Shown piece by piece: positions 2,233 to 60,921 of a stretch of DNA of 64,000 nt. The notes beneath the pieces are model-generated. The model did no database searches. It saw nothing but the letters and a program-made list of their open reading frames with translations, and was not told the origin of the DNA. Both the position numbers and the translations under genes were made by a program. The DNA lies in assembly GCA_964252035.1 (NCBI GenBank), contig OZ176207.1; one strand, 5' to 3'. This DNA is from Podarcis erhardii. Its lineage: Eukaryota. Numbering within the stretch: position 1 is the stretch's first letter; each line of letters starts with the position of its first letter.

Positions 2233-2578
2233 GTGGCGCTGTGGGTTAAACCACAGAGCCTAGGACTTGCCGATCAGAAGGTTGGCGGTTCGAATCCCCG
2301 CGATGGGGTGAGCTCCTGTTGCTCGGTCCCAGCTCCTGCCAACCTAGCAGTTGAAAGCACGTCAAAGTACAAGTAGATAAATAGGTACCGCTCCAGCGGG
2401 AAGGTAAACGGCATTTCCGTGTGCTACTCTGGTTCACCAGAAGTGGCTTAGTCATGCTGGCCACATGACCCGGAAGCTGTACGCCAGCTCCCTCGGCCAA
2501 TAAAGCGAGATGAGCACCGCAACCCCAGAGTCAGTCACGACTGGACCTAATGGTCAGGGGTCTCTTTACCTTTACCTT
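2233..2578 (+). mobile_element. Sauria SINE
   Basis: tRNA-like head with A box (GTGGCGCTGTGG) and B box (GGTTCGAATCC), typical body, 3' (TTTACC)n tail. Similar to other copies in the window. Confidence 0.9.
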
Positions 2579-12567: not shown

Positions 12568-12719
12568 ATAATGTTCATGTACTGATTCCATTTGCTTGAA
12601 TAACTATTTGTTAGGGGTTTTGCAGCAATTACCAATTTCTGCAACATTTTAGTTAGGTAATTCCCAAAAGATGGTTTACGGAGAATGAAATCCAAAATCT
12701 TCTTACACCTGCAGTATTA

Positions 12720-13009
12720 AAGGTAAAGGTACCCCTGACCCTTAGGTCCAGTCGCAGATGACTCTGGGGTTGTGGCACTCATCTCACTCTATAGGCCGAG
12801 GGAGCCAACGTTTGTCCACAGACAGCTTCTGGGTCATGTGGCCAGCATGACTAAGCCGCTTCTGGCTAACCAGAGCAGCACACGGAAACGCTGTTTACCT
12901 TCCCGCCGTAGCAATACCTATTTATCTACTTGCACTTGACGTGCTTTCGAACTGCTGGGTGGGCAGGAGCTGAGACCGAACAACGGGAGCTCACCCTGCC
13001 ATGGGGATT
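12720..13009 (-). mobile_element. 5'-truncated Sauria SINE
   Basis: Reverse-complement SINE body flanked by 12-bp TSD CCTGCAGTATTA (12708-12719, 13010-13021). Confidence 0.88.
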
Positions 13010-13170
13010 CCTGCAGTATTAGAATAGTATTAATTCCTTCAATTTAAGGTGGTGAACTGATTTGCTGCCATTATCGCCATGTTTTAAAAGTAATTTGACT
13101 ATTCCTTCTTTCAAGGAGGAACATCACAGTTCCAGATAAAATATTGCCTGAAAAGTATATTGGAGGGGAG

Positions 13171-13323
13171 GGACGTTGGGTAGAGCTGTGGTCTAAACCA
13201 CAGAGCCTAGGGCTTGCCAATCAGAAGGTCGGTGGTTCGAATCCCCATGATGGGGTGAGCGCCCCTGCTGCAACCCCAGAGTCGTCCACAACTGGACCTA
13301 ATGGTCTGGGGTACCTTTACCTT
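13171..13323 (+). mobile_element. Internally deleted Sauria SINE
   Basis: Head and tail only, 15-bp TSD TATATTGGAGGGGAG (13156-13170, 13324-13338). Confidence 0.85.
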
Positions 13324-13408
13324 TATATTGGAGGGGAGCTTTGGGGAAAGGAATTATAGTTATCAATAATGACAATTATTTCTTTGATATTTACTACTTT
13401 CACCAATA

Positions 13409-19076: not shown

Positions 19077-20305
19077 ATTGCAGAAATATGCACCCATACA
19101 GGGGTTGAACCCATGACCTTGGTCTGAGCTATACTAGTTGGTCTTAAGGTAGGGGGTGGGGAACCTGTGGCCCACACTCCAGCATCATGTGGAGGGGCAC
19201 TGGTTCCTCTTTCCTGTCTTAAAGGGACACAACCACATACAAATTGTGCTGATGGTCTTAATGTGTTATTCTCAGTACTGCCTACTAACAAAAGGAGGTG
19301 GAATTCGGGAGTTTACAATATAGATATTATCTCTGTTGAGAGAATAGAGGATTAAGAACCTGTAGCTCCTGGGTTACGGTTTCCGTTGGCCATGCTGGAA
19401 GAGGCTGATGAAAGCTAAAGTCCAGCACCATTTGGAGGGCCACAGATACAGATGTCTACCCTAATGTAGTTGAAAGTCTGGGTTCAAGCCAGTTCATCCC
19501 CCCAGCAGTTGCTCTTAGTTGTGCCCTGTGCCCCTTTGGCCACCATAGAATGCGGTACATTTTATTACATTAGACCATAGCACTGCAAAGCAAGATAGCA
19601 AAATTTAAACTAGATTACAGAATTTACAGAAGTTACCTAAATTATATCTTTATATTCTCCTCCTTTAAAGTGGAGAGGATCCAAGGGGAGCTTGCCACCA
19701 TAATTCATACCCCGTACAGATACGTAAGCTGGTACCTTCTCTGGACAGTAGAGAAGTGGATACATGTGACTTCACAGCAATAACATACCTAAAATGAAGC
19801 TCTATATGTGAAGCATGATTTGTACTATTTATTTTAAGAGGAACAATTCCATGAGTAGACAAATGACATCATGTTATGAAGATGGAGACATGTGCAGAGA
19901 TTCTTGATGTTGGAGCAATTGCTTAATCTGAGTCAAATTCATTATTGGTTCTTTGTTTATAATCTGCACAAATGATGGTGTGAAGCATGTCGTTCATGAA
20001 ACTTATGTAAATGACATAAATAGTGGACTTACAGCCAAGCAATTTAAACATTTTATAGCAGGTCTTCGCCATTTTAGGTTTGGCTGTGTCTGGACGCTTA
20101 ACTGAATTTCTCCTTTCTTGTGCCTATCTTTTTATTTTCTCTTTTTCTGAGGAATTTTGTTCCATGTGTGCAATGGAAGAATCTGGTGTCAGGAGAATGT
20201 TGTCTTTGCTAAATTGAAGAATAGGGATTCTGAGTTGACCTTTGCTACTTATTGGTATGCATATAAAGTCTTGACATGGAGTTATTGCATAAGTAAGCTG
20301 ATAAA

Positions 20306-20662
20306 GAGGGACATGGGTGGCCCTGTGGGTTAAACCACAGAGCCTAAAACTTGCTGATCAGAAGGTTGGCAGTTCGAATCCCCGCGATGGGGTGAGCTCC
20401 CGTTGCTCGGTCCCTGATCCTGCCAACCTAGCAGTTCAAAAGCACGTTGAAGTGCAAGTAGATAAATAGGTACCGCTCCAGCGGGAAGGTAAACGGCATT
20501 TCTGTGCGCTGCTCTGGTTCGCCAGAACCGGCTTAGTCATGCTGACCACATGACCCGGAAGCTGTACGCTGGCTCCCTCGTCCAGTAAAGCGAGATGAGC
20601 GCCACAACCCCAGAGTCGGTCATGACTGGACCTAATGGTCAGGGGTCCCTTTACCTTTACTT
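20306..20662 (+). mobile_element. Full-length Sauria SINE in KDSR intron 1
   Basis: 12-bp TSD TAAGCTGATAAA (20294-20305, 20663-20674); complete head, body and tail. Confidence 0.92.
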
Positions 20663-20791
20663 TAAGCTGATAAAAGAATATGCAAGATTTTTAGTTGATT
20701 TGAAGAATTATTTAGCATGCGGAGCAGCTTACATACTAATATCATATGTCTAATCATTTGATACTATGATTAGACATATGGTACTCAAGAC

Positions 20792-20983: not shown

Positions 20984-22725
20984 AATCATTTGTGATAAAG
21001 TTGCCTAATAGCAAATAAGCCTTACATCTATCAGAACTTGGAGAGGTATAGCAATCATGTTTAAAGGTAATCCTTTTATCCATAATCCTTCTATCCAAAG
21101 GGTTCACAATGCAGGTCAGTTTCTCATGCACCGTCTCTCATTCCTTCATGCTATATCCTGTAATTCTTCCACTGCCTTTTGTAAGGGCTGAAACTGGCCC
21201 TGCAAGCACTTATCTTCTTTTGTGGACATAAAACTGCACTCCTTTCTTACCAGCAACATCAACACGGATATTGCCACTAGGAAGTGTGGTAGAAACAAAC
21301 TGGAACTTCTTGTCTGCGTAGGAAAGAATTGCTCTGTAACAAACCTCATATTTGCGTTTTAATGGGACATTTTTTACATCCTTCTGTATCCTTGCACCAA
21401 ATCACACTCACAAACCCTCCTTTGGGCTTGTGGATCTATTAACGTATCTTCCAGGGTTTCTAAATGGACATTCAATACCAAAGTATGGAAATGCAAAGCC
21501 TCATTCTCATCATTGCTGTTGCAGCAGAAGAAACCATTTTTGTTTGTTCTTCTAGCCAAGCATTCCTAATTCTGACTAATTCACCTGGTATCAACATACA
21601 AGCTCTTCTAAAGCAGTTGTACAAGTGAGATATTTCTAGTCACACAATTCTTCCCATAAGGAGGACTCCAGCAAAGGATGTCATTTGTTCTTATGGCTTT
21701 AGCCTGTGAAACCACTGGTGAATTTCCTTGAAAGTTTAAGCAGTATATACTTTTTAAATAAAATTTAAAATAACAGATGTGCTGCCTTTGAAATGAGGAA
21801 AATATTATTTTTTAGACTTGAATAGTGAGGGAGAAGAGGTCTTCTTGAGAGATGATACTGAAAGGCTGCTTGTTTACAGGAATGAAAGATTTTGCCACTT
21901 GTGCGTTTTTGATTGGATTTTCCATTGAGTAAGAACCTTTTTTATCCTAGAAGTTGTCCGTACCATGTTCTATCATGTTTTGGACATTGTACAGGAATTG
22001 ATAATCTAGCATGTGAAAAACTGGATCAAGAAGTACACACTGTACTAGGAGCCTCAAATCTGGCACTGCTTGGACATTCTAAGAAACGACAACAACAACA
22101 AAATCAGCACAGTTTTGAAAGGTTCATTCTGCCATCTTATTTTAAATTGTGTCCAATTGTATGCAAACAGAGATGAGAATCTGTACATTTATCTCAGGAA
22201 CCATCATGCAAAAATTGATTACAATATTTTGGGAGCTGTCCAGATGCATAGCAAACAAGTATCCAGAAGTAGTAGAAGTTATGCTGCCTGTGCTTTAACT
22301 TAGGCGAGTTCATTAAATTGCCAATTTACCTAAATTATGATCTTGGTATAGTAATATACCGGAGCTGAAGGGGTATGAGTTTGTTCATAGATGCATCTAC
22401 CCCCTATTTGCCTTCCTCTACCCCCCAAAAAAGTAATCCTTACTGTGTTACCATGCTGAAAGTGAGCTGGGATGTCCATAGACAGCTTGCAGCTTTGTGA
22501 TTGTGGTGGCAATTTCAAAGCAATAGTTGTGGACAGTCGTAACATTAGAAGCTGTCCACATGACACCAAGAGGCATCTCATTACTTACGAAGGGGAAACA
22601 CTATTGCACACATGTGAACAGGCCCAGAGTTTGACCACTCTCTTCTCTAAAAGGCTTATAATTCTAATGTCTATGCTGTCAAGTTTATCAATTTAATCTC
22701 TATGCTTCCCCCCTTCTCTTAAAAG

Positions 22726-22815
22726 GTAACCGGTGGTTCCAGTGGCATTGGGAAATGCGTTGCCATCGAGTGCTTTAAGCAAGGGGCTTTTATAACACTT
22801 ATTGCAAGAAATGAG
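22726..22815 (+). CDS. KDSR: KDSR exon 2 (Rossmann TGxxxGxG motif)
   Basis: AG/GT bounded, 90 nt, [30 protein letters not shown]. Confidence 0.97.
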
Positions 22816-23158
22816 GTAAATTTCTAGCATGCTTATTTAACAGTTATGATGCCCTGAAGCTGTTAATGAAAGGGTTTGAAGCAACAGTAATTATAACTAA
22901 AGCCCTAGTATTTAATTAAATAGTTAAAATCCTTGGCTCCAATCCTACTAAAGTTCACCAAATTTGAAAGCAACAGGGCTTAAATTAGTGATTACTGTAC
23001 TAATTTTATCTGGATTGGGGCCTATTTGTTTCTCCAGAATAAATAAATAAATGACTGTTAGAGTTTGAATACAGTGTTTGAGTTAGCGAGAGTATTAAGC
23101 CAAAGCCAAACTGCTTATTCTATTGGCTATTCCATTTATAACCATTTACCTATGGTTG

Positions 23159-23294
23159 TGGGGTGTGGGGAACCTTTTCTCCTCCAGATGTAGTTGAATG
23201 ACAACTCCTATTCCAGCAAGCATGGCCAGTGGCCCAGGGATAAAGGGAGGTGTCGTTCAGCAACATCTGGAGCACCAAAGTTTCCTCACACCTG
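23159..23294. mobile_element. Old hAT-type fold-back MITE
   Basis: Degenerate GTGGGGAAC...GTTTCCTCAC termini and CTCCAGATGT/ACATCTGGAG internal inverted motifs shared with 29004 and 34225. Confidence 0.55.
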
Positions 23295-29003: not shown

Positions 29004-29139
29004 CAGGCTTCCTCAACCTCGGGCCTCCAGATGTTTGGGGACTAGAATTCCCATCATCCCTGACCACCGGTCCTGCTAGCTAGGGATAATGGGAGTTGTA
29101 GGCCAAAAACATCTGGAGGGCTGAGGTTGAGGAAGCCTG
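29004..29139. mobile_element. hAT-type MITE
   Basis: TIR CAGGCTTCCTCAACCT/AGGTTGAGGAAGCCTG, 8-bp TSD CCTTAGAC (28996-29003, 29140-47). Confidence 0.9.
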
Positions 29140-29675: not shown

Positions 29676-29741
29676 GTTGTGCATTGTATCTCTCTTGATG
29701 TTTCCAAAGATGCTGCAAATGTGGAAAGGGCCCTTAAACAG
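29676..29741 (+). CDS. KDSR: KDSR exon 4
   Basis: catag|GTT...CAG|gtaagg, 66 nt, [22 protein letters not shown]. Confidence 0.95.
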
Positions 29742-29888
29742 GTAAGGAAATATTGGTTTTACCTGCCTGGCTGGCTCCCTCCCCCCCATTTTTCAATTGC
29801 AAGTGTTTATTGCAGAAATGTTCTGCTGACAGTAGTGATATTTATGGACACAAATTTGTTATCTCACCTGCTATTTTTTTCTTTCCAG

Positions 29889-29984
29889 GCTCAAGAGAAG
29901 TTGGGTCCAGTTGACATGCTTGTAAATTGTGCAGGAACATCAATTAATGGAAAGTTTGAAGATACTGACATCAGTATGTTTGAA
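29889..29984 (+). CDS. KDSR: KDSR exon 5
   Basis: ttccag|GCT...GAA|gtaagt, 96 nt, [32 protein letters not shown] (NCAG, the SDR NNAG-equivalent motif). Confidence 0.97.
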
Positions 29985-30356
29985 GTAAGTGAGCCTGACT
30001 TCTCCTGTTTGAGTATGTACTGGTATACTAATTCAACGGCACCTAGAAAATCACACCAGATTGAGAAATGTTTTTGAATGATAAAATTATATATAAAATT
30101 TACCTAACTTGTAGCAGCACATTTTATTGTCCATTTCAAATAAATGACCCAACATTGTATATTTTTTTTTCTAATCCCCCCATAGTTTTCCACTGGGTTG
30201 AATGTTTTCTATCTGTGTCATAGACCCAATAATTCTTATTAGATATTTATTGTGTCTAAAAATGTTTGCTGCCTTTAAACATCTATTATGAAAGGCCTTT
30301 AATGTATGTTGTGAAAGAGAAGTTTGCCATACGCTATTGTTACATAACTTTCATTC

Positions 30357-31055: not shown

Positions 31056-31839
31056 ACATGGTTTAATGTAACATGTGAACCAAGCCGTTAATTAGTTTCA
31101 GAGGAAAAAAATTGAGAAGTGATTTTATAAAAGTAGAGCAGTTGCAAATGTCATTTTCTACTAGTTCTCTACTCAGTGCAGATTATGTAATTAGTAAACT
31201 GTTGTGTCTTAAATTTTTACTGGATATAATTCCATTGCTTTGTATATATTAACCGTTTGCTCCCATGCTTGCTTAGTGTTCTCTATACCAGAGAAGGCTA
31301 ACTTTTGGCCTGCTGTAGGTTGTTGCCCTCCAATTACTATCATTCCTTACATGCCATGCACGCTAGCTGGGCCAGTGGAAGTGGAGTCCAGCAGCATATG
31401 GAGGGCCACAGGTTAGCCATCCCTTTTTAGTTGGGTTCAATCCTGGAGATGCTGGGGAGCAAATCTGGGATATTCTGCAGGTAAAACATGTATTTTACCA
31501 CTTAGCTACAATGTTTCCCAGTTTAAAAGTTTGGCCACCCTTGTCCTCTCGGCAGGAGTTACATAGGCAATCAAAACAGCAACCACATCACAAAGGTTAC
31601 TGCTCATCATCAAAGGAATCCCCAAGTGGTTGCCTTCCAGCATGTTAATGGACTATAACACAGCATTTTACAGCTTGGAAACTCCATTTGTAACGTGAAG
31701 CAACATCGTCCATAGTAGGAATTTTGCACTTGGTGGCGATGAGTATTAATATTGCTGATGCCTTGAGTTTAAAGATGCAGAGCAGCAATCACACTTCGTT
31801 ATTTCATTTCATTTACATTAATATCACACTTCGTTAATA

Positions 31840-32132: not shown

Positions 32133-32178
32133 TATAAAATATGTTAACTAGGCCTCCGACTTGTATGTTTGTCTACAG

Positions 32179-32370
32179 CAATTGATGGCTATCAACTATC
32201 TGGGTAGTGTCTACCCAACTCGAGCAGTAGTTACCACCATGAAGGAACGGAGGAGGGGAAGGATTGTGTTTGTGTCATCCCAGGCTGGACAAGTTGGAGT
32301 GTTTGGTTATACTGCTTATTCTTCAACAAAGTTTGCTCTTCGAGGACTAGCTGAAGCTTTGCAAATGGAG
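32179..32370 (+). CDS. KDSR: KDSR exon 6 (catalytic S and YxxxK)
   Basis: ctacag|CAA...GAG|gtatga, 192 nt, [10 protein letters not shown]...FVSSQAG...[19 protein letters not shown]. Confidence 0.97.
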
Positions 32371-33771
32371 GTATGATTCTCTGTTCCTTACCTGCATGTA
32401 TCTTATAGTTTCTCTGTATAACATTAACAACAACAGCAACATATAAACAAAAAGAGCTAAAACCATAGGGGGAAATAATTAAAGAATCAAGTAAACATTA
32501 ATAGTATTATATAAGAATATTGTACAATATAGTGTTGCCCAAAAAGTACATAAGCAGGCTCAGCAACATTCAACGCTGTTTACAAGGCATAGACTTAGCT
32601 ATTCTATTGCAATAAGTGGTACAATATTCCAGAGCGCATGACACCATTCGGCTCAGAAGGCCTGTATTGTATACGATTTGCAAAACTGTTCATTTAGTAG
32701 GGTTAGTTGTCCACTGGCTCAAAATGAGAAGTAATAGTGCAGGCAGTGTATTGAGCTGCTTTACTCTCAGATATTGTAGATCTGGTTTCGGGCAGAGCGT
32801 GCATATGCAAAATCGCATAGAGCGAAGAATCCCCAGGATCGCCACCTTCCTGCCCAGCTGGAGCTCTAGAAAGGCAGCTCCCTCTTTCCTCCTCTGGTAG
32901 CTCTTTGTCCTCCCTATGGGCGGGCCAGAAGTACAGCCTGGAGAGCAACTGCAGTGTCGCCACCGCTCCCACTGCTCCCGTGTCCCACCAGGAGTGGCTG
33001 GGCCTGCCCTTGCTAGAGAGGCACCCTCACAGTGGTTTGGATTTGCTGCAGCCCTTGCCAGCTGACAGTGTGGAGCAAGCCAGCCAAGCTGAGGGACTGG
33101 CACCTTATGCAGCTGCAGAACCACCATGCACACCTAATAGGAGGAGGAGGCAAGAGCCCGAGATGGCAGCAATGCAAGCAAGGCATGTGTTACCCAGGTT
33201 TGCTTGTTCCTCCCCCTGCTATACTTCATTCAACCCTCTTCCCGCTGCATATCTCCTGAGATCCCAATGAGAAGCTCCCTCCCAGTAGCGGCTGGTGAGG
33301 TGGCAGAGGCAGAGGGTCACTGCTCTCCTTGCTTCCAAACAACATGTAGCTTTGCAGGAAGGCCTTCATCCCCAGGGTGTTTCTTGCAGAGAAGTAGCAG
33401 GAATGCTATTTTAAAAGAGCAAGATTTCTCCTTGGCTTTCTGCTCGAGATAAAAATAGAGGCTGCAGCCAATAGTATAAAGTTGAGTTGCAGAAGCAGAG
33501 GTGTAGCAAGTTCAGGTGGTACAGATTTCTTTTTTGTCACCCCCCCCCCCAATTTAAATTATTAAAAGAAGGGAAAATAAGATACGTGCAGTTGCAAGTG
33601 TTATTTTCTGGTTTATATACTTAATATTGTAAGTATAAGCACTTAAAACCCCTGTAGACACCATGGCTTCAATATCAGCCAGAAACAAATTTCTTCTCAC
33701 CCATCACCCCATTGCTCTGTTCACTATCTAGCCTGATGGTAGAACTTGAACTTTGCACACTATTTTGCGGT

Positions 33772-34119
33772 AAAGGTAAAGGGACCCCTGACCATTAGGT
33801 CCAGTTGTGGCCAACTCTGGGGTTGTGGCGCTCATCTCGCTTTATTGGCCGAGGGAGCTGGCGTACAGCTTCTGGGTCATGTGGCCAGTATGACGAAGCC
33901 GCTTCTGGCAAACCAGAGCAGCGCATGGAAACGCCGTTTACCTTCCCGCCGGAGCGGTACCTATTTATCTACTTGCACTTTGACGTGCTTTTGAACTGCT
34001 AGGTTGGCAGAAGCAGGGACTGAGCAACGGGAGCTCACCCCGTCGCGGGGATTTGAACCACCGACCTTCTGATCGGCAAGTCCTAGGCTCTGGTTCAACC
34101 CACAGCGCCACCCGCGTCC
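33772..34119 (-). mobile_element. Full-length Sauria SINE in KDSR intron 6
   Basis: TSD CTATTTTGC(G/A)G (33761-71, 34120-30); complete element on the minus strand. Confidence 0.92.
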
Positions 34120-34224
34120 CTATTTTGCAGTAGATAGGCCTAATAATGGAACTGCCCTAATAAGGATGTGTGTTTTCCTTATGGTTTGGTGCAGCTCCCT
34201 TTACTTTTACAATGCCGCTTAAAA

Positions 34225-34352
34225 CAGGTGGCTAATCTGTGTCCCTCCAGGTGTTGCTGGACTACAACTCCCATCATTCCTATTGGCCATACTAGCTGGG
34301 ACCAGTGGGGGACGTAGTCCAGCAACATCTGGAGGGACACAGGCTAGCCCCT
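34225..34352. mobile_element. Old hAT-type fold-back MITE
   Basis: CCTCCAGGTGTTGCTGGACTAC...CGTAGTCCAGCAACATCTGGAGG inverted arms. Confidence 0.6.
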
Positions 34353-40885: not shown

Positions 40886-42414
40886 CTTGGGTTCTTTTCC
40901 CAGAAAAGATAACTGGGAAGGGGGAAGAACAGCTGTGCATTTAGCTTTATGGAAAAACAGGGAGCAGAGCTATTCAGAAAGTTAGGTACACCCTGATATG
41001 CCTTGGCACACCTTGTTAATGGTGCAGTCCAAATCAGTAATAAGAGACCACCCCTAATCACCTTGTTGTTCAGTTAGACCAGAGCCAGTGCACATCCCTA
41101 CTGTCTGGGAGATGGATAACTGGGGTTAGGTCCATCTTATCCAGGAAGCATTGCAACCTCCAAACAGGCTCAAGCCGGTGTGAAACAACTTCCCAGGCAT
41201 AAATCCAGGTCAATAAGTACCACAAACACATGCAAGATGCACGCCTTCTGCTTCAGGATTATAGTTCCATCCAGAATGATAATCCTTTGTCAGATCATGA
41301 GAATTTCTGACCAGCAATACCTGTTTTAAGCTTCAGTATTCGGCTGCCTTTTGTTCATAGCAACATCTGTTTTGTTAACAAGAACAAATCTCTTAACGTC
41401 TTGTGAATTGGTTCACATGAAGTGCCAAACAATGGTTCTACTTCTTCCTCTCCCATGCTTTGTTTATTAATTCCTGGTTTGTGGCAAAGAATGTGCTGTT
41501 GTGTCCAAACTGAAAAACTAGTTTGTGATAGGCTTGTATCCTAGAATGGAGGTCATGTGCAAACTGGAGTGTGCCTGTTGCAGCAAACCAGGAACCATCT
41601 AAACCGAAAGTCAGATGTGAAAGGGAGAGCATGTGAGCACAGAGCTTGTTCTTATATCATCAAGCCATAGTTTGGCATATATGAATGTCTTGCATCTCCT
41701 TAATGTTTACCTGCAGAAATTGCCATGTATTTCAGAAAGGATAACCAAATGCATAGCTAAACTACTGAACTCATGCAAGTAAAGCTGGAAATCATACAAT
41801 TTGGACTTGATCTTGAGATCAAGCAGCTTGCAAATGTATGCCTATGTTAAATTGGACTGCTGCTACCCATCTGGCAAATGTCTCCTCAGCCTTGCTGGGC
41901 CTGCTAAACATTCATTGAATCTGTTCATCATAAGGTTGTTTCACATTGTTTGCCTGTGACTTTTCTACTGTTTACCCATTATTATTCTCCAGGGAGCAAT
42001 GCAACCCTAAATCATGTTCTCTTCTACAAATTTAAAAAAAACACTAGTCATTCTGTAGTCTTTTGCATTGTTTCTGCTTCAGGTAGATTGTTGTGCAGAT
42101 ACATGGGGCAGGTGATTCATTCATTAGCTTCCAAAAGGGGGGGGGGGATATTAAAATAAGGTCCCTTCCAACCATGTGACTATATTTCATAGTACTTTCA
42201 AATAACTTATTAATTTATTTTAATTAGAGAACAAAATATACATCTCAAGCTTTGTTTAAATAAGACTAATCTTTAATAGAACAGTCCTTTTTCACATAAT
42301 AATTGAGTGCTTGGTGAACCACACTTCTGATCATCAAATCTGATGAGAGAAAATATTAAATGACCACTAAGCAGAAGTATGTTGAATAAGATCTCTCCTT
42401 CTCTCCCTTTACAG

Positions 42415-42525
42415 CTTATTTTCCTGGGCTTTTTCCGCTTGCTTGCCCTGTATTATATAGCAGGTTTTGACAGCATTGTTCGTCGTTGCATGGCAAAAAA
42501 AGAGAAATCTGAAAAGACGGACTGA
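42415..42525 (+). CDS. KDSR: KDSR exon 10 (last coding exon)
   Basis: Long pyrimidine tract then acag|CTT; LIFLGFFRLLALYYIAGFDSIVRRCMAKKEKSEKTD-stop (TGA). The ten exons total 336 aa. Confidence 0.95.
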   Translation, partial: LIFLGFFRLLALYYIAGFDSIVRRCMAKKEKSEKTD

Positions 42526-49371: not shown

Positions 49372-50282
49372 TGTAAGGCAACTGCTTGAGTTCATAAATA
49401 GCAGTGTCATACCTGAAGCAGAACATTACGTGGGAGAAGAGCTGGAAGGAAACTGGAAGCATGGGCAAATCAGGTAATGCGACTGCCTCGTTTGTTGACA
49501 TAAAAACAGATTTCCACTTAACACGAGTAGGAGGACAAATCCCTGAAATAATACAAGAATACACTGTTTCAGTCAGCACGTGGAATGTCTGGGTGATGTC
49601 CAGGGGTGCTGACTATTTGTCACTTAGCACAACGAAGTCTTTAAGTGACTTGCAACTGATTAAGAGCCCGCCCCCAAAGCACAGCATGTAATCAAAACAA
49701 TATGTTACACTCAAACCATTTCAATAACTCATAAAGAACGCTGTGAAAAAGAACACGAACTTTAGCAGCAAGAGCATTTCTAACAAGTACGCCATCAGCC
49801 AACTTATATGTTGGGAGAAAGTGCCTGGAAGAAAGGTTTTAACTTAGCACTGAAACAGTGTTAATGATTGTGCCAAGCAGAGCTGAGAACATTCCACAGG
49901 TGGGGAGATGCAACCCAAAATATGCTTTCCTTTGTGCTCCAAATCTCCCTCAGGGCATCCAGAGAAAGTGCTCTTGCAACAGCAGTTCTTTCCCTTGCAT
50001 GCTCCCAAAATCGGGGACCGGGTGGGGCAGGAAGGGAGAAGCGCCTTACCACAGCACTTAAGAAATCACCACCTGCCTTCTAGAAGCTGTTTGAAGTGTT
50101 AGATGTACAGAAACCAATTTCAGATTCTGCCACTCATTTAATTGATAATAAATTCTAGGCTTAAGCTATCTTTGGTTTGAGCAAAAGCATTTACAAATTA
50201 GTTCACACACCAAAAATAATGGGAAATTATAAATTTAAAGCACCTGACTAATGGGTCTTTCTTTCTCTCCTGGCTGGGAAAG

Positions 50283-50613
50283 GGCTTGCCAATTGGAAGG
50301 TTGGCAGTTCAAATCTGCACGGCGGGGTGAGCTCCTGTTGCTCTGTCCCAGCTCCTGTCAACCTAGCAGTTCGAAAGCATGCCAGCGCAAGTAGATAAAA
50401 AGTTTACCGCTGCGGTGGGGAAGGTAAACGGCATTTCCATGCACTCTGGCACTCGTCACAGTCCTCTGTGAGCCAGTAGCGGTTTAGTCATGTTGGCCAC
50501 ATGACCTGGAAAACTGCAGACAAACACCAGCTCCCTTGGCCTGAAAAGCAAGATGAGTGCTGCACCCCATAGTCACCTTTGACTGGACTTAACCGTCCAG
50601 GGGTCCCTTTACT
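50283..50613 (+). mobile_element. 5'-truncated Sauria SINE (divergent subfamily)
   Basis: SINE body homology; flanking CTGGGAAAG duplication. Confidence 0.8.
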
Positions 50614-50704
50614 TGCCTGGGAAAGCACTACATCTCAGGTCAGCAGGAGGCTAATCGTTAATAAAATACATGGGACAGGATCCAGCTAAACCGTTATGCT
50701 AGTG

Positions 50705-50948
50705 CATGGGTAGGCAAACTAAGGTCCAGGGGCCGGATCTGGACCTTCTAAATCCAGCCCGCAGATGGTCCGGGAATCAGCGTGTTTTTACATGAGTAGA
50801 ATGTGTGTTTTTATTTAAAATGCATCTCTGGGTTATTTGTGGGGCATAGAAATGTGTTCATATTTCCTCCCAAAAATATAGTCCAGCCCCCCACAGGGTC
50901 TGAGGGACAGTGGACCGGCCCCCTGCTGAAAAAATTTGCTGACCCCTG
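50705..50948. mobile_element. hAT (Charlie-like) MITE
   Basis: 8-bp TSD TGCTAGTG (50697-704, 50949-56); termini CATGGGTAGGCAAA/TTTGCTGACCCCTG. Confidence 0.85.
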
Positions 50949-51068
50949 TGCTAGTGCAAGGACTTTTAGCTGTGCACTGGAATCTCCCCACCTTCTCCTC
51001 TGGCAACCCTTTAAAATTCACTCCGGATTCCCATTTCTTGCTTGTCCCATGTAAGGGCTTGAATTTGC

Positions 51069-51486
51069 TAGCCGACCTAACCGGAAGAGTCCGCGACCAG
51101 AAGGAGGAGGAGTATCAGGAAGAGTGGAATAAATTTAATGATTATCTAGTTAAATTTGTTAAGTTAAATTAACTGAAAATAGCTTGCAGATACTTAATTG
51201 GCTTAGGATTTTATTTATGTTAAGTGATGAATTAATATGTTTAATTCCATAAGGTGAAGATTTAAGGATGTTAATGTTTAAGTTAAATTTCATAAGAATT
51301 GGGATTTGGAAAACCGTTAAAAGGACATGCAATGAAATTCAACCAAGGGGAAGCGGGGAAGTCACTTAACAAAGTTAGTAATTGTAATTTTCAATAAGGC
51401 TATGATTTATGTTTGTTTGTCTTGTGTGTTTGTTTGTTTGTTTATAATATTGTGAAAACTAACTAAAAAAATTGGGGGGGGGGAGA
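51069..51486 (+). mobile_element. 5'-truncated L1-like LINE 3' end
   Basis: Residual ORF end ADLTGRVRDQKEEEYQEEWNKFNDYL-stop (same pattern as 5842-6368), AT-rich 3'UTR, TSD GAATTTGC (51061-68, 51487-94). Confidence 0.7.
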
Positions 51487-52170
51487 GAATTTGCAGCTGA
51501 GCTGAAGTAGTACTTCTTAATAAAGGGTGATTACTCAGAAAATGTGTTTCGTTGGCACGTAACTGATGAGTAGTAGGGGGGAAATATTTAAAGGATAGGG
51601 TTTTTAAAAAAGTAAGCTATATCCCCTACCCCAAAAAAGACTTAATGTCCTATATATAGCAATGTGAAAAGACAGGAGGAGAGTGGTTTCTTCATTCCTT
51701 CCCCACCCACCCATGGGGGCCATGACCAGGGCTTCTGGGCTCTGGTCTTTCCACTTGGGGGCTAAGGGTGCACTTTGCGGGGTGAGTCCTTGCTTATGAG
51801 TAGAAAATCCAAATCCTTGCAAACTGCAAAATTAGGAAGTGCCACTAGGTGGTAACATGTAGCAAGAGAAGGGTTTTGTAGCAATCTTAATAGGTGTGTG
51901 GGGGGGGGGGGATGCACAGCTTCAGATTTAATAAGAAAATTGCCACCATCCCTTTCTGCTTAGTAAATTTCTACAGTGAAGCACTAATAGTGGCTCAATT
52001 AGCCTAATTCAATGACACAATATCTGCTTCATTCAAATATTTCTGAGGAGGGGAGGAGGCAAGATGATCGCACTTTCTTTTAAGTCTCACCCCCCCACAC
52101 ACACACTTAATTTTAATACTGTTTTTAGAGGACTATCCTGTACCCAGTTGCTTGCAATTAAGCTGCACTG

Positions 52171-52755
52171 GGATGCAGGTGGCGCTGTGGGTTAAACCAC
52201 AGAGCCTAGGACTTGCCGATCAGAAGGTCGGCAGTTCGAATCTTTGTGACGGGGTGAGCTCCCGTTGCTCGGTCCCAGCTCCTGCCAACCTAGCACCTGT
52301 TTTAAGCAGCATTGTAAAAGTAAAGGGAGTTGCACCAAACCATAAGGAAAACACACATCCTTATTAGTGCAATTCCATTATTAGTCCTATCTACTGCAAA
52401 ATAGGAATGTGGGTGGCGCTGTGGGTTGAACCAGAGCCTAGGACTTGCCGATCAGAAGGTCGGCGGTTCAAATCCCCACGACAGGGTGAGCTCCCGTTGC
52501 TCAGTCCCTGCTTCTGCCAACCTAGCAGTTCCAAAGCACCTCAAAGTGCAAGTAGATAAATAGGTACCACTCCGGCAGGAAGGTAAACGGCGTTTCCGTG
52601 CGCTGCTCTGGTTTGCCAGAAGCGGCTTCGTCATGCTGGCCACATGACCCAGAAGCTGTATGCCGGCTCCCTCAGCCAATAAAGCGAGATGAGCACCGCA
52701 ACCCCAGAGTTGGTCACGACTGGACCTAATGGTCAGGGGTCCCTTTACTTTTACC
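52171..52755 (+). mobile_element. Composite Sauria SINE: SINE head + captured intronic DNA + full SINE
   Basis: One 12-bp TSD TAAGCTGCACTG (52159-70, 52756-67) encloses a head (52171-52294), 111 bp matching 34120-34230 (reverse complement) and a full SINE (52405-52755). Confidence 0.88.
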
Positions 52756-52854
52756 TAAGCTGCACTGAACTCAGTGGGACATACTGCTGAATGGGAATGC
52801 ATAGGATTGCATTGTTAATTGCCTATTCACCTTATCTCTCTCTTTCTCTCTTAC

Positions 52855-52855
<1 letters not shown>

Positions 52856-52888
<33 letters not shown>
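52856..52888. repeat. (AC)n microsatellite
   Basis: Direct inspection. Confidence 0.9.
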
Positions 52889-52890
<2 letters not shown>

Positions 52891-53106
52891 GTAGAATTAA
52901 AACATGTCACACTGCCCACACCCAGCTTTATGAAGCATATTTCTAACTTATTGGAACACACTTCTAAAAATGGTTTGGAGATTGCATAGATTATCAATGA
53001 ATTCCTTAAATCTTAAAAACAGTTTGGCAATGAATCTTCGTCCTGATTCTAATTTCAGTGTCTGGTCAGGGCTCTGGAAAATGAGGGACAATTTCTGCTT
53101 TAATAA

Positions 53107-53539
53107 ATTTCCCAATAGTGATGTATGGAAGTGGGAGCTGGATCATAAATAAGGCTGATCGCCAAAGAATTGATGCTTTTGAATTATGGTGCTGGGGGAG
53201 ATTCTTGAGAGTCCCATGGACTGCAAGAAGATCAAACCTATCCATTCTGAAGGAAATCAGCCCTGAGTGCTCATTGGAAGGACAGATCCTGAAGCTGAGG
53301 CTCCAATACTTTGGCCACCTCATGAGAAGAGAAGACTCCATGGGAATGACCCTGATGTTGGGAAAGATGGAGGGCACAAGGAGAAGGGGACGACAGAGGA
53401 TGAGATGGTTGGATACTGTTCTTGAAGCTACCAGCATGAGTTTGACCAAACTGCGAGAGGCAGTGGAAGACAGGAGTGCCTGGCGTGCTCTGGTCCATGG
53501 GGTCACGAAGAGTCGGACACAACTAAACAACAACAACAA
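53107..53539 (+). mobile_element. Bov-B (RTE) LINE 3' fragment
   Basis: RIDAFELWCW..LRVPWTARRSN.SILKEISPECSLEG..LKL.LQYFGHLMRR...RGRQRMRWLD...WRALVHGVTKSRT, the Bov-B C-terminus; (CAA)n tail. Confidence 0.92.
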
Positions 53540-54606: not shown

Positions 54607-56802
54607 AAGTTCCCAACTCTGATACAGCCCCAATACACCATTACAAGTTGCTCAGCCTAGTGCAGCTGGCTGGGCTGAATCTGGTTGCCCTAAGGATGGT
54701 TTTAGCCCCCAAAAGGGGCATTCTGGGTGTGGTGTGACCAGACGGAGCCTTAGGCTGAATCCTAAACCCATTCAGCTCTGTTATATGTCCCAACACAGAA
54801 CAGCATTTTAAAGGCTTGTTTTCTGCGATCCAGGCTTTGGAAGAGTAGCAGTAGCCCCTTCGGATCTGGTGTAACTTTACAACAGCTTAGCTTACACTGG
54901 CTTGCTTTATGTCTGCTTATTCTTGTGCTTGATATTGCTCCTTTAATATTTGCACTACTGGAAAAACTGATTTGAAGACAAGTTTCTGAATAAAGTATCT
55001 ACATACTCTTTCTGGATGCAAGTATTATTCCTGTTGCTCCCTTCTCCATCCTAGCTTTTGCCTTGATCAACATATTTTTATACTATATTTTTTATACTAT
55101 CCCTGCCCATTTATTTGTTATCGTGTTGTGTCTTTTAACATGTAAGCCTGAGGGGTAAAACTTCTGATCTTTGTAAGCTACCTTGGGAACATTTGTTTTA
55201 GAGTAGGTAGATATAATGCACTGATATTCATGGGTACAAGCTATCTCATGTTCCAACAGTGCTTTGGAATCCAATCTTATTCTTTTTTTTATTCTTTTTT
55301 TTTTACAAAATCTTTCAATGTCATCTCTCTAGGATAACTGTATTAATGACAGGGATTTTGGTATGCCCTCTTTCTGGCAGTTCTTGAATGAATTGATTTT
55401 AACAATTCTGTCAGACAAGGTGAGTTACTTTCCCAGTGCTTCTAAGCCTATTACTGGAACAAAACTCCAACATTTGATTACAAATGGCTCAAAAGTTTGC
55501 TTAATGCAGCAAGCTTTTGATATTAGATTCACAACATACATTTAAAGCACACACATTTAAAACACATGACTTCCCTTAAAGAGTCATGAGAACTGCAGCT
55601 CCCCCCGCCGAGTTATGATTCCCTGCATCCTTAACAAAGCTGCATATTTTATTTCACTCATATCTTATTTTTATTAGACTCATACCTACCAGTAAAAGCA
55701 AACTTTTGAATTACACGAAACCTCATAATAGGCAAAAAATAAAAATATTTTTGAGTTTTGTGTAATAGAGAAACTAGAATTTACCATATGCTGTTTCAAG
55801 ATAAGGCATTCTATTTGTTCGGTTACCAGCAGCATTATTTTAATTTAATTTATTACCTGCCCCTCAGCCTAAGGTCACAAGGCAGGTTACAGCTATTTAA
55901 AAGCTTATAATGAAAAAAATGCAATCACAGAAATATTACCTTTTAAAAATAAACATTGGAAGTGCAGGAAAACAAAGGTCAAAATCTGTTGACCCTGTAC
56001 AGATGCTTGTCAAGTTCTACAAACATTAGGAATTTTGTTTTATTTTTTCAAAATGAAAGTTTGGAATCAGGATTACGGTTCATGTAGGGTGAAGTTACAT
56101 GCCAGGTAGGGGGCAGCTCCACAGTTCACACAGGAACAGCCCCATGCCCCTACCATCCTCCATACTTATTTCACCCTTCATCAACCTGGTGCCCACCGGA
56201 TACAGCTAGACTACAGCTGTGCTGCCTTGGGCTGATGGGAATTTGGAGTCCAGCAATATCTGGAGAGCACCAGCTTGGAGATAGCTGCCTTATTGCTTAG
56301 CTTGGGGCTTATTGTAAGGTCTTTCAGCTTGCCTTCTAGGTCAAAAGCCCTCAAAAAGGCAACTTCCACAGAACATAAATGATGCTTCTATCAAAAACAG
56401 AGCAAGACAAATGAGGCATCCTGCAGCAGAATAGAAAAGAGGCATTGGGGAGCCAGCAATATGTAATGGCGGTAAAGTCCTCAGACCCTCCAAGTGTCCC
56501 TATTTTCCAGGGACAGTCCTGGATTTACAGAAGCTCGTCCCTGTTTCTGATTTGATCCCGGAATGTCTCGCTTTCCCTTAGGGTGTTCCTATTTTCATCA
56601 AAGGTTTGTTGGAGGTTATGGTAGGATGTCCCTATTTTAAAGTAAATGATTTTGATTAAAGATTTCCACGAATTACAAAAGAACGTGCAATGTCTCTCTT
56701 TGTTGTTCAGATTATAAAGTCTTTTGGTTACGTTCAATGTAAGACAATATGGTATCCAGAGATGTTTTAGGCCGGGTATGGAGTTATGCAACCCCAGACC
56801 AG

Positions 56803-60176: not shown

Positions 60177-60290
60177 CACTGGCACTTACTATTACTGGCT
60201 GCTTTATTTTGGGGGGGGCGGGAGGGGGGACACTCCATCCGCTTCTGCATATATTTTTCCCCTCCTTTCCCCTACTCCTTGCTATAAATG

Positions 60291-60848
60291 ATGGCTCAGA
60301 CTGGGATAAGAGGTTACGACACAAGAGAGATAGTGCAGACGTACATCCATTACAAGCTGTCGCAGAAAGGATATGACTGGGTTGCCAGTGAAGACAGAGA
60401 AGACCTTCCTTCTCCTCCTCCTCCAGATCCTGCTGCTGCAGAGACCTTCCCTAACCTTGCTAGGCTGGCATCTCATCCTTCCGAGCTGCCTGTAAGTAAC
60501 GTCGCCCCGGCTGGCGGACCGCATCCTGCGCCACAGGTTGTCCACGCGACTTTACGTCAAGCTGGGGATGAGTTTTCGCGGCGTTACAGGAGGGATTTTG
60601 CTCAGATGTCTGGACAGCTGCACTTGACCCCGGTCACTGCCAGAGCTCGCTTTGCGGCAGTTGTCGAAGAGCTCTTCCGAGACGGGGTGAACTGGGGGAG
60701 GATTGTGGCGTTCTTTGAGTTTGGTGGCATGATGTGCGTGGAGAGCGTCAGCCGGGAGATGTCGCCCCTTGTGGACAATATCACAGTGTGGATGACTGAC
60801 TACCTGAACAGGCACCTGGACAACTGGATCCAAGACAATGGAGGCTGG
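60291..60848 (+). CDS. BCL2: BCL2 first coding exon (BH4, loop, BH3, BH1, BH2); the TM-encoding exon lies beyond the window
   Basis: [28 protein letters not shown] (BH4), [12 protein letters not shown] (BH3), [20 protein letters not shown] (BH1), WIQDNGGW (BH2); donor GTATGT at 60849. An in-frame ATG also lies at 60288. Confidence 0.97.
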
Positions 60849-60921
60849 GTATGTTTCTCTCTGTGTTTCCATTATCAAATGCGTTCGTTTCCACTATTTC
60901 AATATTACAATGTACCCTTAC

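Follow-up and report, generated by a model that had tools for sequence, protein, structure and literature searches.

A composite SINE in the spacer between KDSR and BCL2 of Podarcis erhardii is likely to have arisen in two steps: a SINE first inserted in the spacer, and DNA-templated repair from an inverted paralogue in a KDSR intron later wrote a foreign tract into it. The composite lies ~9.6 kb beyond the KDSR stop codon and 7.5 kb ahead of the BCL2 start codon in the 64-kb stretch of DNA that was analysed (the window), which contains no N bases. It constitutes an unusually well-resolved natural footprint, as the prior recipient (in P. lilfordi), the donor, and the product are all readable and both boundaries are explained by the sequence.

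The composite and its donor

Leads to the KDSR and BCL2 exons were short motifs that were then checked against Pfam; the exons are given as separate pieces and were not joined into a spliced model (Table 1). Since KDSR exons on the plus strand flank the donor SINE, this SINE is intronic and antisense to KDSR. The Bcl-2/BH4 exon beginning at 60288 places the composite between KDSR and BCL2. The neighborhood and orientation of the two genes are the same as in mammals.

Table 1. Coordinates of the composite, its donor, and the surrounding features in the window
Feature	Position	Strand	Remarks
5′ target-site duplication TAAGCTGCACTG of the resident SINE	52159-52170	+	Exact repeat of 52756-52767; begins with TA
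Retained head of the resident SINE (Sauria/Squam1), positions 1 to ~126	52171-52295	+	Continuous with the left flank, both here and in P. lilfordi (L001)
Exit junction, CA microhomology	52294-52295	+	Overlap of SINE and donor-flank homology
Captured 111 bp of unique KDSR-intron DNA (5′ flank of donor SINE)	52294-52404	+	106/111 to donor
Full-length donor-type SINE	52405-52755	+	Donor-copied at least to 52629; the resident may have supplied the last 126 bp
3′ target-site duplication of the resident SINE	52756-52767	+	Same TAAGCTGCACTG 12-mer
Donor SINE, KDSR intron between exons at ~32.2 and ~35.4 kb	33769-34119	-	Antisense to KDSR; both duplication halves present
Donor copy of the 111-bp flank	34120-34230	-	BLAST/MAFFT
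MITE, 120 bp, with 44-nt terminal inverted repeats	34230-34349		Arms 34230-34273 and 34306-34349
KDSR exon pieces (adh_short)	22723-22824, 29676-30074, 32152-32373	+	Pfam match
Additional KDSR-like pieces	~35.4, ~38.6, ~42.4 kb		Motif leads
Likely final KDSR coding exon	42364-42522		Side observation
BCL2 first coding exon	60288-60866		Bcl-2 and BH4 domains (Pfam)

Positions 52294-52755 on the plus strand are the reverse complement of 34230-33769, with 437 of 462 nucleotides identical in an ungapped alignment (self-BLAST and MAFFT). The flank contributes 106 identities in 111 positions, a figure that the preliminary description had already given and that both programs returned, and the SINE part 331 in 351. 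The remaining SINEs of the window (2233-2577, 20303-20669, 12718-13009, and 50281-50614) show only 72-90% identity to 52405-52755. A third copy of the 111-mer was not found in the window by BLAST, even at E ≤ 10. Homology to the donor ends at the last bases of the SINE, ...TTTACC.

The preliminary description had further proposed that the adjoining SINE carries diagnostic variants of the intron SINE, and those it named were found in both elements. Donor and composite SINE have in common a 2-bp deletion, GTTGAAC, TTCAAATCC, CAGTCCC, and the rare transversion C52629, which accounts for 4-10% of the SINE depth in read contigs and is absent from the P. lilfordi orthologue. The retained head has neither the 2-bp deletion nor the other donor variants; it is 93% identical to 2233-2349 and only 86.5% identical to 52404-52527.

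The sequence TAAGCTGCACTG matches exactly at two places in the window, the two ends of the composite (0.37 matches are expected in the window at up to one mismatch). A single duplication pair therefore encloses the head, the flank, and the SINE, as had been claimed. The donor SINE has a duplication of its own, CTATTTTGC[G/A]GTA, at 33760-33772 and 34120-34132; both halves reported earlier are present, with the first starting one base before the 33761 given for it. The donor's 5′ copy of this duplication was carried into the composite, at 52392-52404, and its 3′ copy was not. At the junction between head and flank, SINE homology runs up to 52295 and donor-flank homology starts from 52294, and the strict microhomology is thus the 2-bp CA. 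Microhomology had been correctly expected here, but the TAGC assigned to it matches only at a 1-nt offset (TAGCA in the recipient, TAGCCA in the donor).

The orthologous site in Podarcis lilfordi

The BCL2 exon of the window matched BCL2 proteins of lacertids, and through them the comparison DNA (L001) was reached; it comprises 20.9 kb from the single-exon BCL2 model of P. lilfordi, the sole outgroup genome compared. Window positions 50000-52295 align to 65-2368 of this DNA and positions 52411-53109 to 2250-2960, both onto one SINE. A simple SINE at the orthologous site, which the preliminary description had suggested looking for, is indeed what P. lilfordi carries: a full-length element at 2244-2594, enclosed by the same 12-bp duplication TAAGCTGCACTG at 2232-2243 and 2595-2606. 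This element is without the 2-bp head deletion and has the consensus states TTCGAATCC, CTCGGTCCC, GGTTCGCC, GGCTTAGTC, CCCGGAAG, and AGTCAG where the donor and the composite share derived ones. Because a simple SINE of non-donor type occupies the same duplication, the donor block was a later addition to a resident SINE that already had its duplication. Furthermore, the 111-mer is absent from the 20.9 kb around the P. lilfordi site. It is therefore not native to the KDSR-BCL2 spacer there, and the direction of copying was from the KDSR intron to the spacer, which upholds the earlier naming of KDSR intron 6 as the donor.

These observations bear directly on a history with a single retrotransposition, in which a reverse transcriptase (RT) copied a transcript of flank plus SINE, switched to a second SINE RNA at position 126, and made the duplication along with the insertion. 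One duplication pair does surround everything, the head begins at the full 5′ end of a SINE, and the donor homology ends at a SINE 3′ end, all as such a history would have it. However, the duplication predates the composite, since in P. lilfordi it surrounds a simple SINE that is not of donor type. The template switch in one step, which the preliminary description had offered as an alternative, is thereby refuted unless P. lilfordi acquired an independent insertion at the identical 12-bp site, and we consider this history exceedingly improbable.

Divergence at non-CpG positions amounts to 10/462 (2.2%) between the copy and the donor and to 61/1475 (4.1%) between the flanks of the window and those of P. 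lilfordi. The former is about half of the latter, in keeping with an event after the split from P. lilfordi. We also considered that P. lilfordi once had the composite and lost it through recombination of the two heads, and rejected this; such a loss should have left a donor-type body, and the body of the P. lilfordi SINE is without donor markers.

One further difference within the element concerns positions 52277 and 52281. The window head reads AGCTC there, as does the family consensus, and the P. lilfordi orthologue and the donor-type SINEs read TGCTT; this may reflect a short conversion patch in one lineage.

Copy number in read contigs

Read contigs of four related species were placed on 51700-53200, and their summed depth, which overlapping contigs inflate, is not a copy number. 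This depth was 16-204 over the unique flanks, 71-417 in the bin of the 111-mer (52312-52362), and 4-30 million in the SINE bins. Since the 111-mer thus reaches 2-6 times the single-copy depth of the flanks and the SINE ~10^5-10^6 times, the 111-mer is a low-copy sequence and not a dispersed repeat. The window contains two copies of it, and L001 contains none; of the earlier expectation of exactly two genomic hits, the contigs bear out a low copy number.

In all four species, at least three letter combinations of the 111-mer are found per species, and one of them (C52330 with G52337) differs from both copies of the window. In X9, two contigs cease matching at 52294, with 25-32 unlike letters leftward. 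Elsewhere in the genome, one or two further donor-like copies may exist. The same combinations, together with the summed depth of 2-6 times single copy, could be taken to mean that the 111-mer is a repeat, or that flank plus SINE is a mobile composite subfamily, so that the KDSR intron would not be the specific source. This reading is very unlikely, given the gulf in depth between the 111-mer and the SINE, the inflation of the former by overlapping contigs, the lack of a third copy in 64 kb and of any in L001, and the finding that both duplication halves surround the SINE only at the intron copy.

The contigs also speak to an assembly artefact, that is, a false join of two SINE-containing reads. 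Among the contigs listed, none in any run bridges the head/flank junction at 52294/52295, where SINE k-mers break contigs. Against a false join, an X1 contig covering 52338-52439 with 0 differences and a depth of 18.6, a single-copy value, spans the flank/SINE junction with the private letters of the composite. The left-flank contig extends into the head in four of four species, and 25 private differences from the donor are not what a mis-join is expected to give. An artefact of this kind is hardly credible.

Extent of the copied tract

The donor is certainly the source of the flank and of SINE positions 1-126, and the donor block comprises the flank and the SINE from position 1 to at least ~225. 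To the right of position 126, the donor markers are one non-CpG change, C52629, and three CpG-type transitions, which reach 52711. CpG transitions recur, and two parallel CpG changes between P. lilfordi and the donor-derived head are visible in the alignment. As C52629 is the only non-CpG marker to the right of the break and the other three may be parallel changes, the tract end falls between 52629 and 52755. Resident homology of at most ~125 bp would then have been available for strand invasion, with conversion of ~100 bp or more on the invading side. To judge from the markers right of 52629, a SINE derived wholly from the donor, as copying through RNA predicts, would also be compatible with the element. 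The markers do not establish a switch point in the final 45 bp of the SINE; sites private to the donor occur throughout the element, and the majority of markers are of CpG type.

At its other end, the copied tract stops at the outer base of the MITE, 34230. As DNA, the MITE forms a hairpin of -39.2 kcal/mol (z = -10.1) whose stem begins at the terminal bases. Diverged members of its family, with GGCTAA...TTAGCC termini and arms of ~44 nt, lie at 31319-31418, 29024-29120, 23181-23272, 19406-19447, and 56233-56265, scattered over the KDSR introns and the spacer. Because the family is old and diverged, the element was probably present before the event.

A probable repair origin and its relation to known processes

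In the history that we favor, a Sauria/Squam1 SINE inserted between KDSR and BCL2 by target-primed reverse transcription, making the TAAGCTGCACTG duplication; this insertion is demonstrably older than the split from P. lilfordi. In the lineage of the window, the resident SINE would later have broken, or a replication fork would have stalled, near position 126. The right-hand 3′ end could then have paired, over a distance of 18 kb, with the inverted and diverged SINE of the KDSR intron and been extended across the head of the donor SINE and on into the 111 bp of unique upstream DNA. Ordinary annealing would have failed, as the left end offered only ~126 bp of homology with ~13% divergence. Synthesis would have halted at the foot of the MITE palindrome, and the nascent end would have been sealed to the left end through the 2-bp CA microhomology. 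The product would be the resident head, the captured flank, and a donor-type SINE within the old duplication, with the donor locus unchanged. The outcome of this second step can be read at the site, and from it we infer the mechanism. Its route may have been break-initiated (SDSA finished by end joining) or replicative (FoSTeS/MMBIR), and the two would leave the same sequence footprint.

Published models (PMC2583991) include strand invasion that is completed by end joining, switches of template via inverted repeats, and palindromes as stall sites, and second-end capture is poor with homology of ≤150 bp or with diverged or heterologous sequence (PMC7407515). Of the features that a repair model calls for, a pre-existing homologous recipient is found in L001 (2244-2594), and the donor keeps both duplication halves (33760-34132). 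The right boundary lies inside the SINE (52629-52755), and the left one is the CA beside the non-homologous 111-bp flank. The preliminary description had pictured the break in a resident SINE as repaired by microhomology-primed copying. Repair from a nearby inverted paralogue is retained, in the light of the simple SINE of P. lilfordi, but homology between the two SINEs probably gave access to the donor, with microhomology used at the exit junction only.

The retained head shows a local peculiarity ~50 nt to the left of the junction. At 52243-52247, it reads CTTTGTG, in contrast to the CCCCGCG-like letters of the family consensus, P. lilfordi, and the other copies; this amounts to four C>T changes within 6 nt. 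The cluster may stem from deamination during the repair event; a break at 52295 would have left the strand concerned as a single-stranded 3′ tail.

A second retrotransposition, this time onto the resident SINE, is the main rival and could in principle have given a similar product. A rare antisense KDSR-intron transcript of the 111-nt flank plus the donor SINE would have been reverse-transcribed by Bov-B at the 3′ junction of the resident SINE, and its 5′ end would have been resolved ~224 bp upstream in the resident element, deleting positions 127-350. The tail (ACCTTT)n of the resident followed by TA recreates the Tn-TA signature (PMC13295347), the donor-type SINE may reach the exact 3′ end (CpG-type markers run to 52711), and a hairpin could stall reverse transcriptase just as it could DNA polymerase. 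However, the transcript would have to start beyond the flank and run antisense, KDSR being on the opposite strand, and read-through by RNA polymerase III would tend to be cut off by the TTTT at 52300-52303. The target deletion of 224 bp would also have to end within the same SINE. In a genome of ~1.5 Gb, an insertion without local bias has a chance of ~4e-5 per event of landing as close as 18 kb to its source. Retrotransposition is not known to prefer nearby sites. We therefore regard a second retrotransposition as unlikely. DNA-templated repair, on the other hand, is in accord with the local use of a template, the donor being inverted and in cis at a distance of 18 kb; it is this locality, along with the need for an antisense transcript, that points to DNA rather than RNA as the template.

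The composite resembles several known systems. Homologous invasion finished by end joining (PMC2583991, PMC7407515) shares with it a prior recipient repeat, entry by homology, an overrun into unique donor flank, a seal by 2-bp microhomology, and an intact donor. In contrast to that system, the present case arose naturally in the germline and became fixed in a lineage of lizards; it is known from sequence alone, and it involves inverted SINEs ~87-88% identical and 18 kb apart as well as a stop at a MITE palindrome. FoSTeS/MMBIR and serial replication slippage (PMC2583991) have in common with it a local inverted template, a microhomology join, a deletion-plus-insertion, and a palindrome at the switch point; here, however, the entry switch lay within 350 bp of SINE homology instead of microhomology, and there was one small detour of 462 bp. 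In ectopic gene conversion between SINEs (e.g., Alu-Alu), donor-type variants likewise replace those of the recipient and the donor is unchanged, but ordinary conversion stays within homology, whereas the composite gained a duplicated SINE head and 111 bp of flank without homology. LINE 5′ transductions and RT template-switch chimeras (U6/L1-type, SVA) also place an upstream flank and an element in one duplication, with the head of a second element at the 5′ end. Their duplication arises with the chimera at an empty site, whereas the present site already held a simple SINE.

Thus, the event is a known kind of repair, started by homology and finished by end joining, or of the FoSTeS/MMBIR type; it is a clean new example and no new mechanism. 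It shows how a dense population of SINEs can relocate short pieces of unique DNA within one locus, in this instance into the spacer at 7.5 kb before the BCL2 start codon. A further lesson is that one target-site duplication around a composite is no proof of a single retrotransposition. Going further would be speculative, and we give little credence to either of two extensions. SINE-guided capture might be recurrent in lacertid genomes, with Squam1 breaks patched from neighbors and MITEs ending the tracts, or else the template might have been a locally retained antisense intron RNA, through RNA-templated repair or local Bov-B reuse of the resident 3′ junction. If recurrent capture were true, unique intronic or regulatory DNA would be shuffled locally between SINE sites.

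Family identity of the SINE and further observations

The SINEs of the window are ~351 bp long and end in CCCTTTAC(C/T)TTTACC, with seven copies or fragments in the 64 kb. In SINE orientation, both duplications begin with TA (TAAGCTGCACTG and TACTGCAAAATAG); a clear TTT ~10 nt upstream of the duplications is not obvious. Sauria SINEs (= Squam1) are described as ~350 nt long and highly abundant in lacertids, with an (ACCTTT)n tail and duplications starting with T (PMC13295347; the family also in PMC10702118). Specifically, their duplications have been reported to start with TA, with a Tn-TA cleavage signature (PMC13295347). By length, abundance, tail, and TA-start duplication, the element of the composite fits the published Sauria/Squam1 SINE, which is mobilized by Bov-B. 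A scan of 52100-52800 for a tRNA-derived head gave no tRNA with ARAGORN and no tRNA match at E ≤ 1 with Rfam. Diverged SINE heads are often missed by tRNA and Rfam scans.

Position 126 of the SINE, at which the junction of the composite lies, is also an indel boundary between SINE subfamilies. In the read contigs, many genomic copies are without ~17-18 nt (GTTCGAAAGCACGTCAA) starting right after this position (52292-52295 joined to 52544-52546). Within the 111-mer, the 15-nt string CCCTTTACTTTTAC(A) at 34196-34210 (= 52318-52332 reversed) recurs without difference in the SINE tail at 52740-52754. The match may be due to chance, or the string may be what is left of a heavily truncated SINE or LINE tail.

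Beyond the composite, a stretch of ~430 bp at 53110-53538 is present in the window and has no counterpart in P. lilfordi (L001 2960-2971). The stretch overlaps a repeat of very high copy number (depth 10^5-10^6 from 53077), which has long open frames on both strands. A second complex SINE cluster occupies 12718-13325, where a minus-strand SINE (12718-13009) lies beside plus-strand fragments of a head (13177-13264) and a tail (13270-13325); this could be a second rearranged SINE pair.
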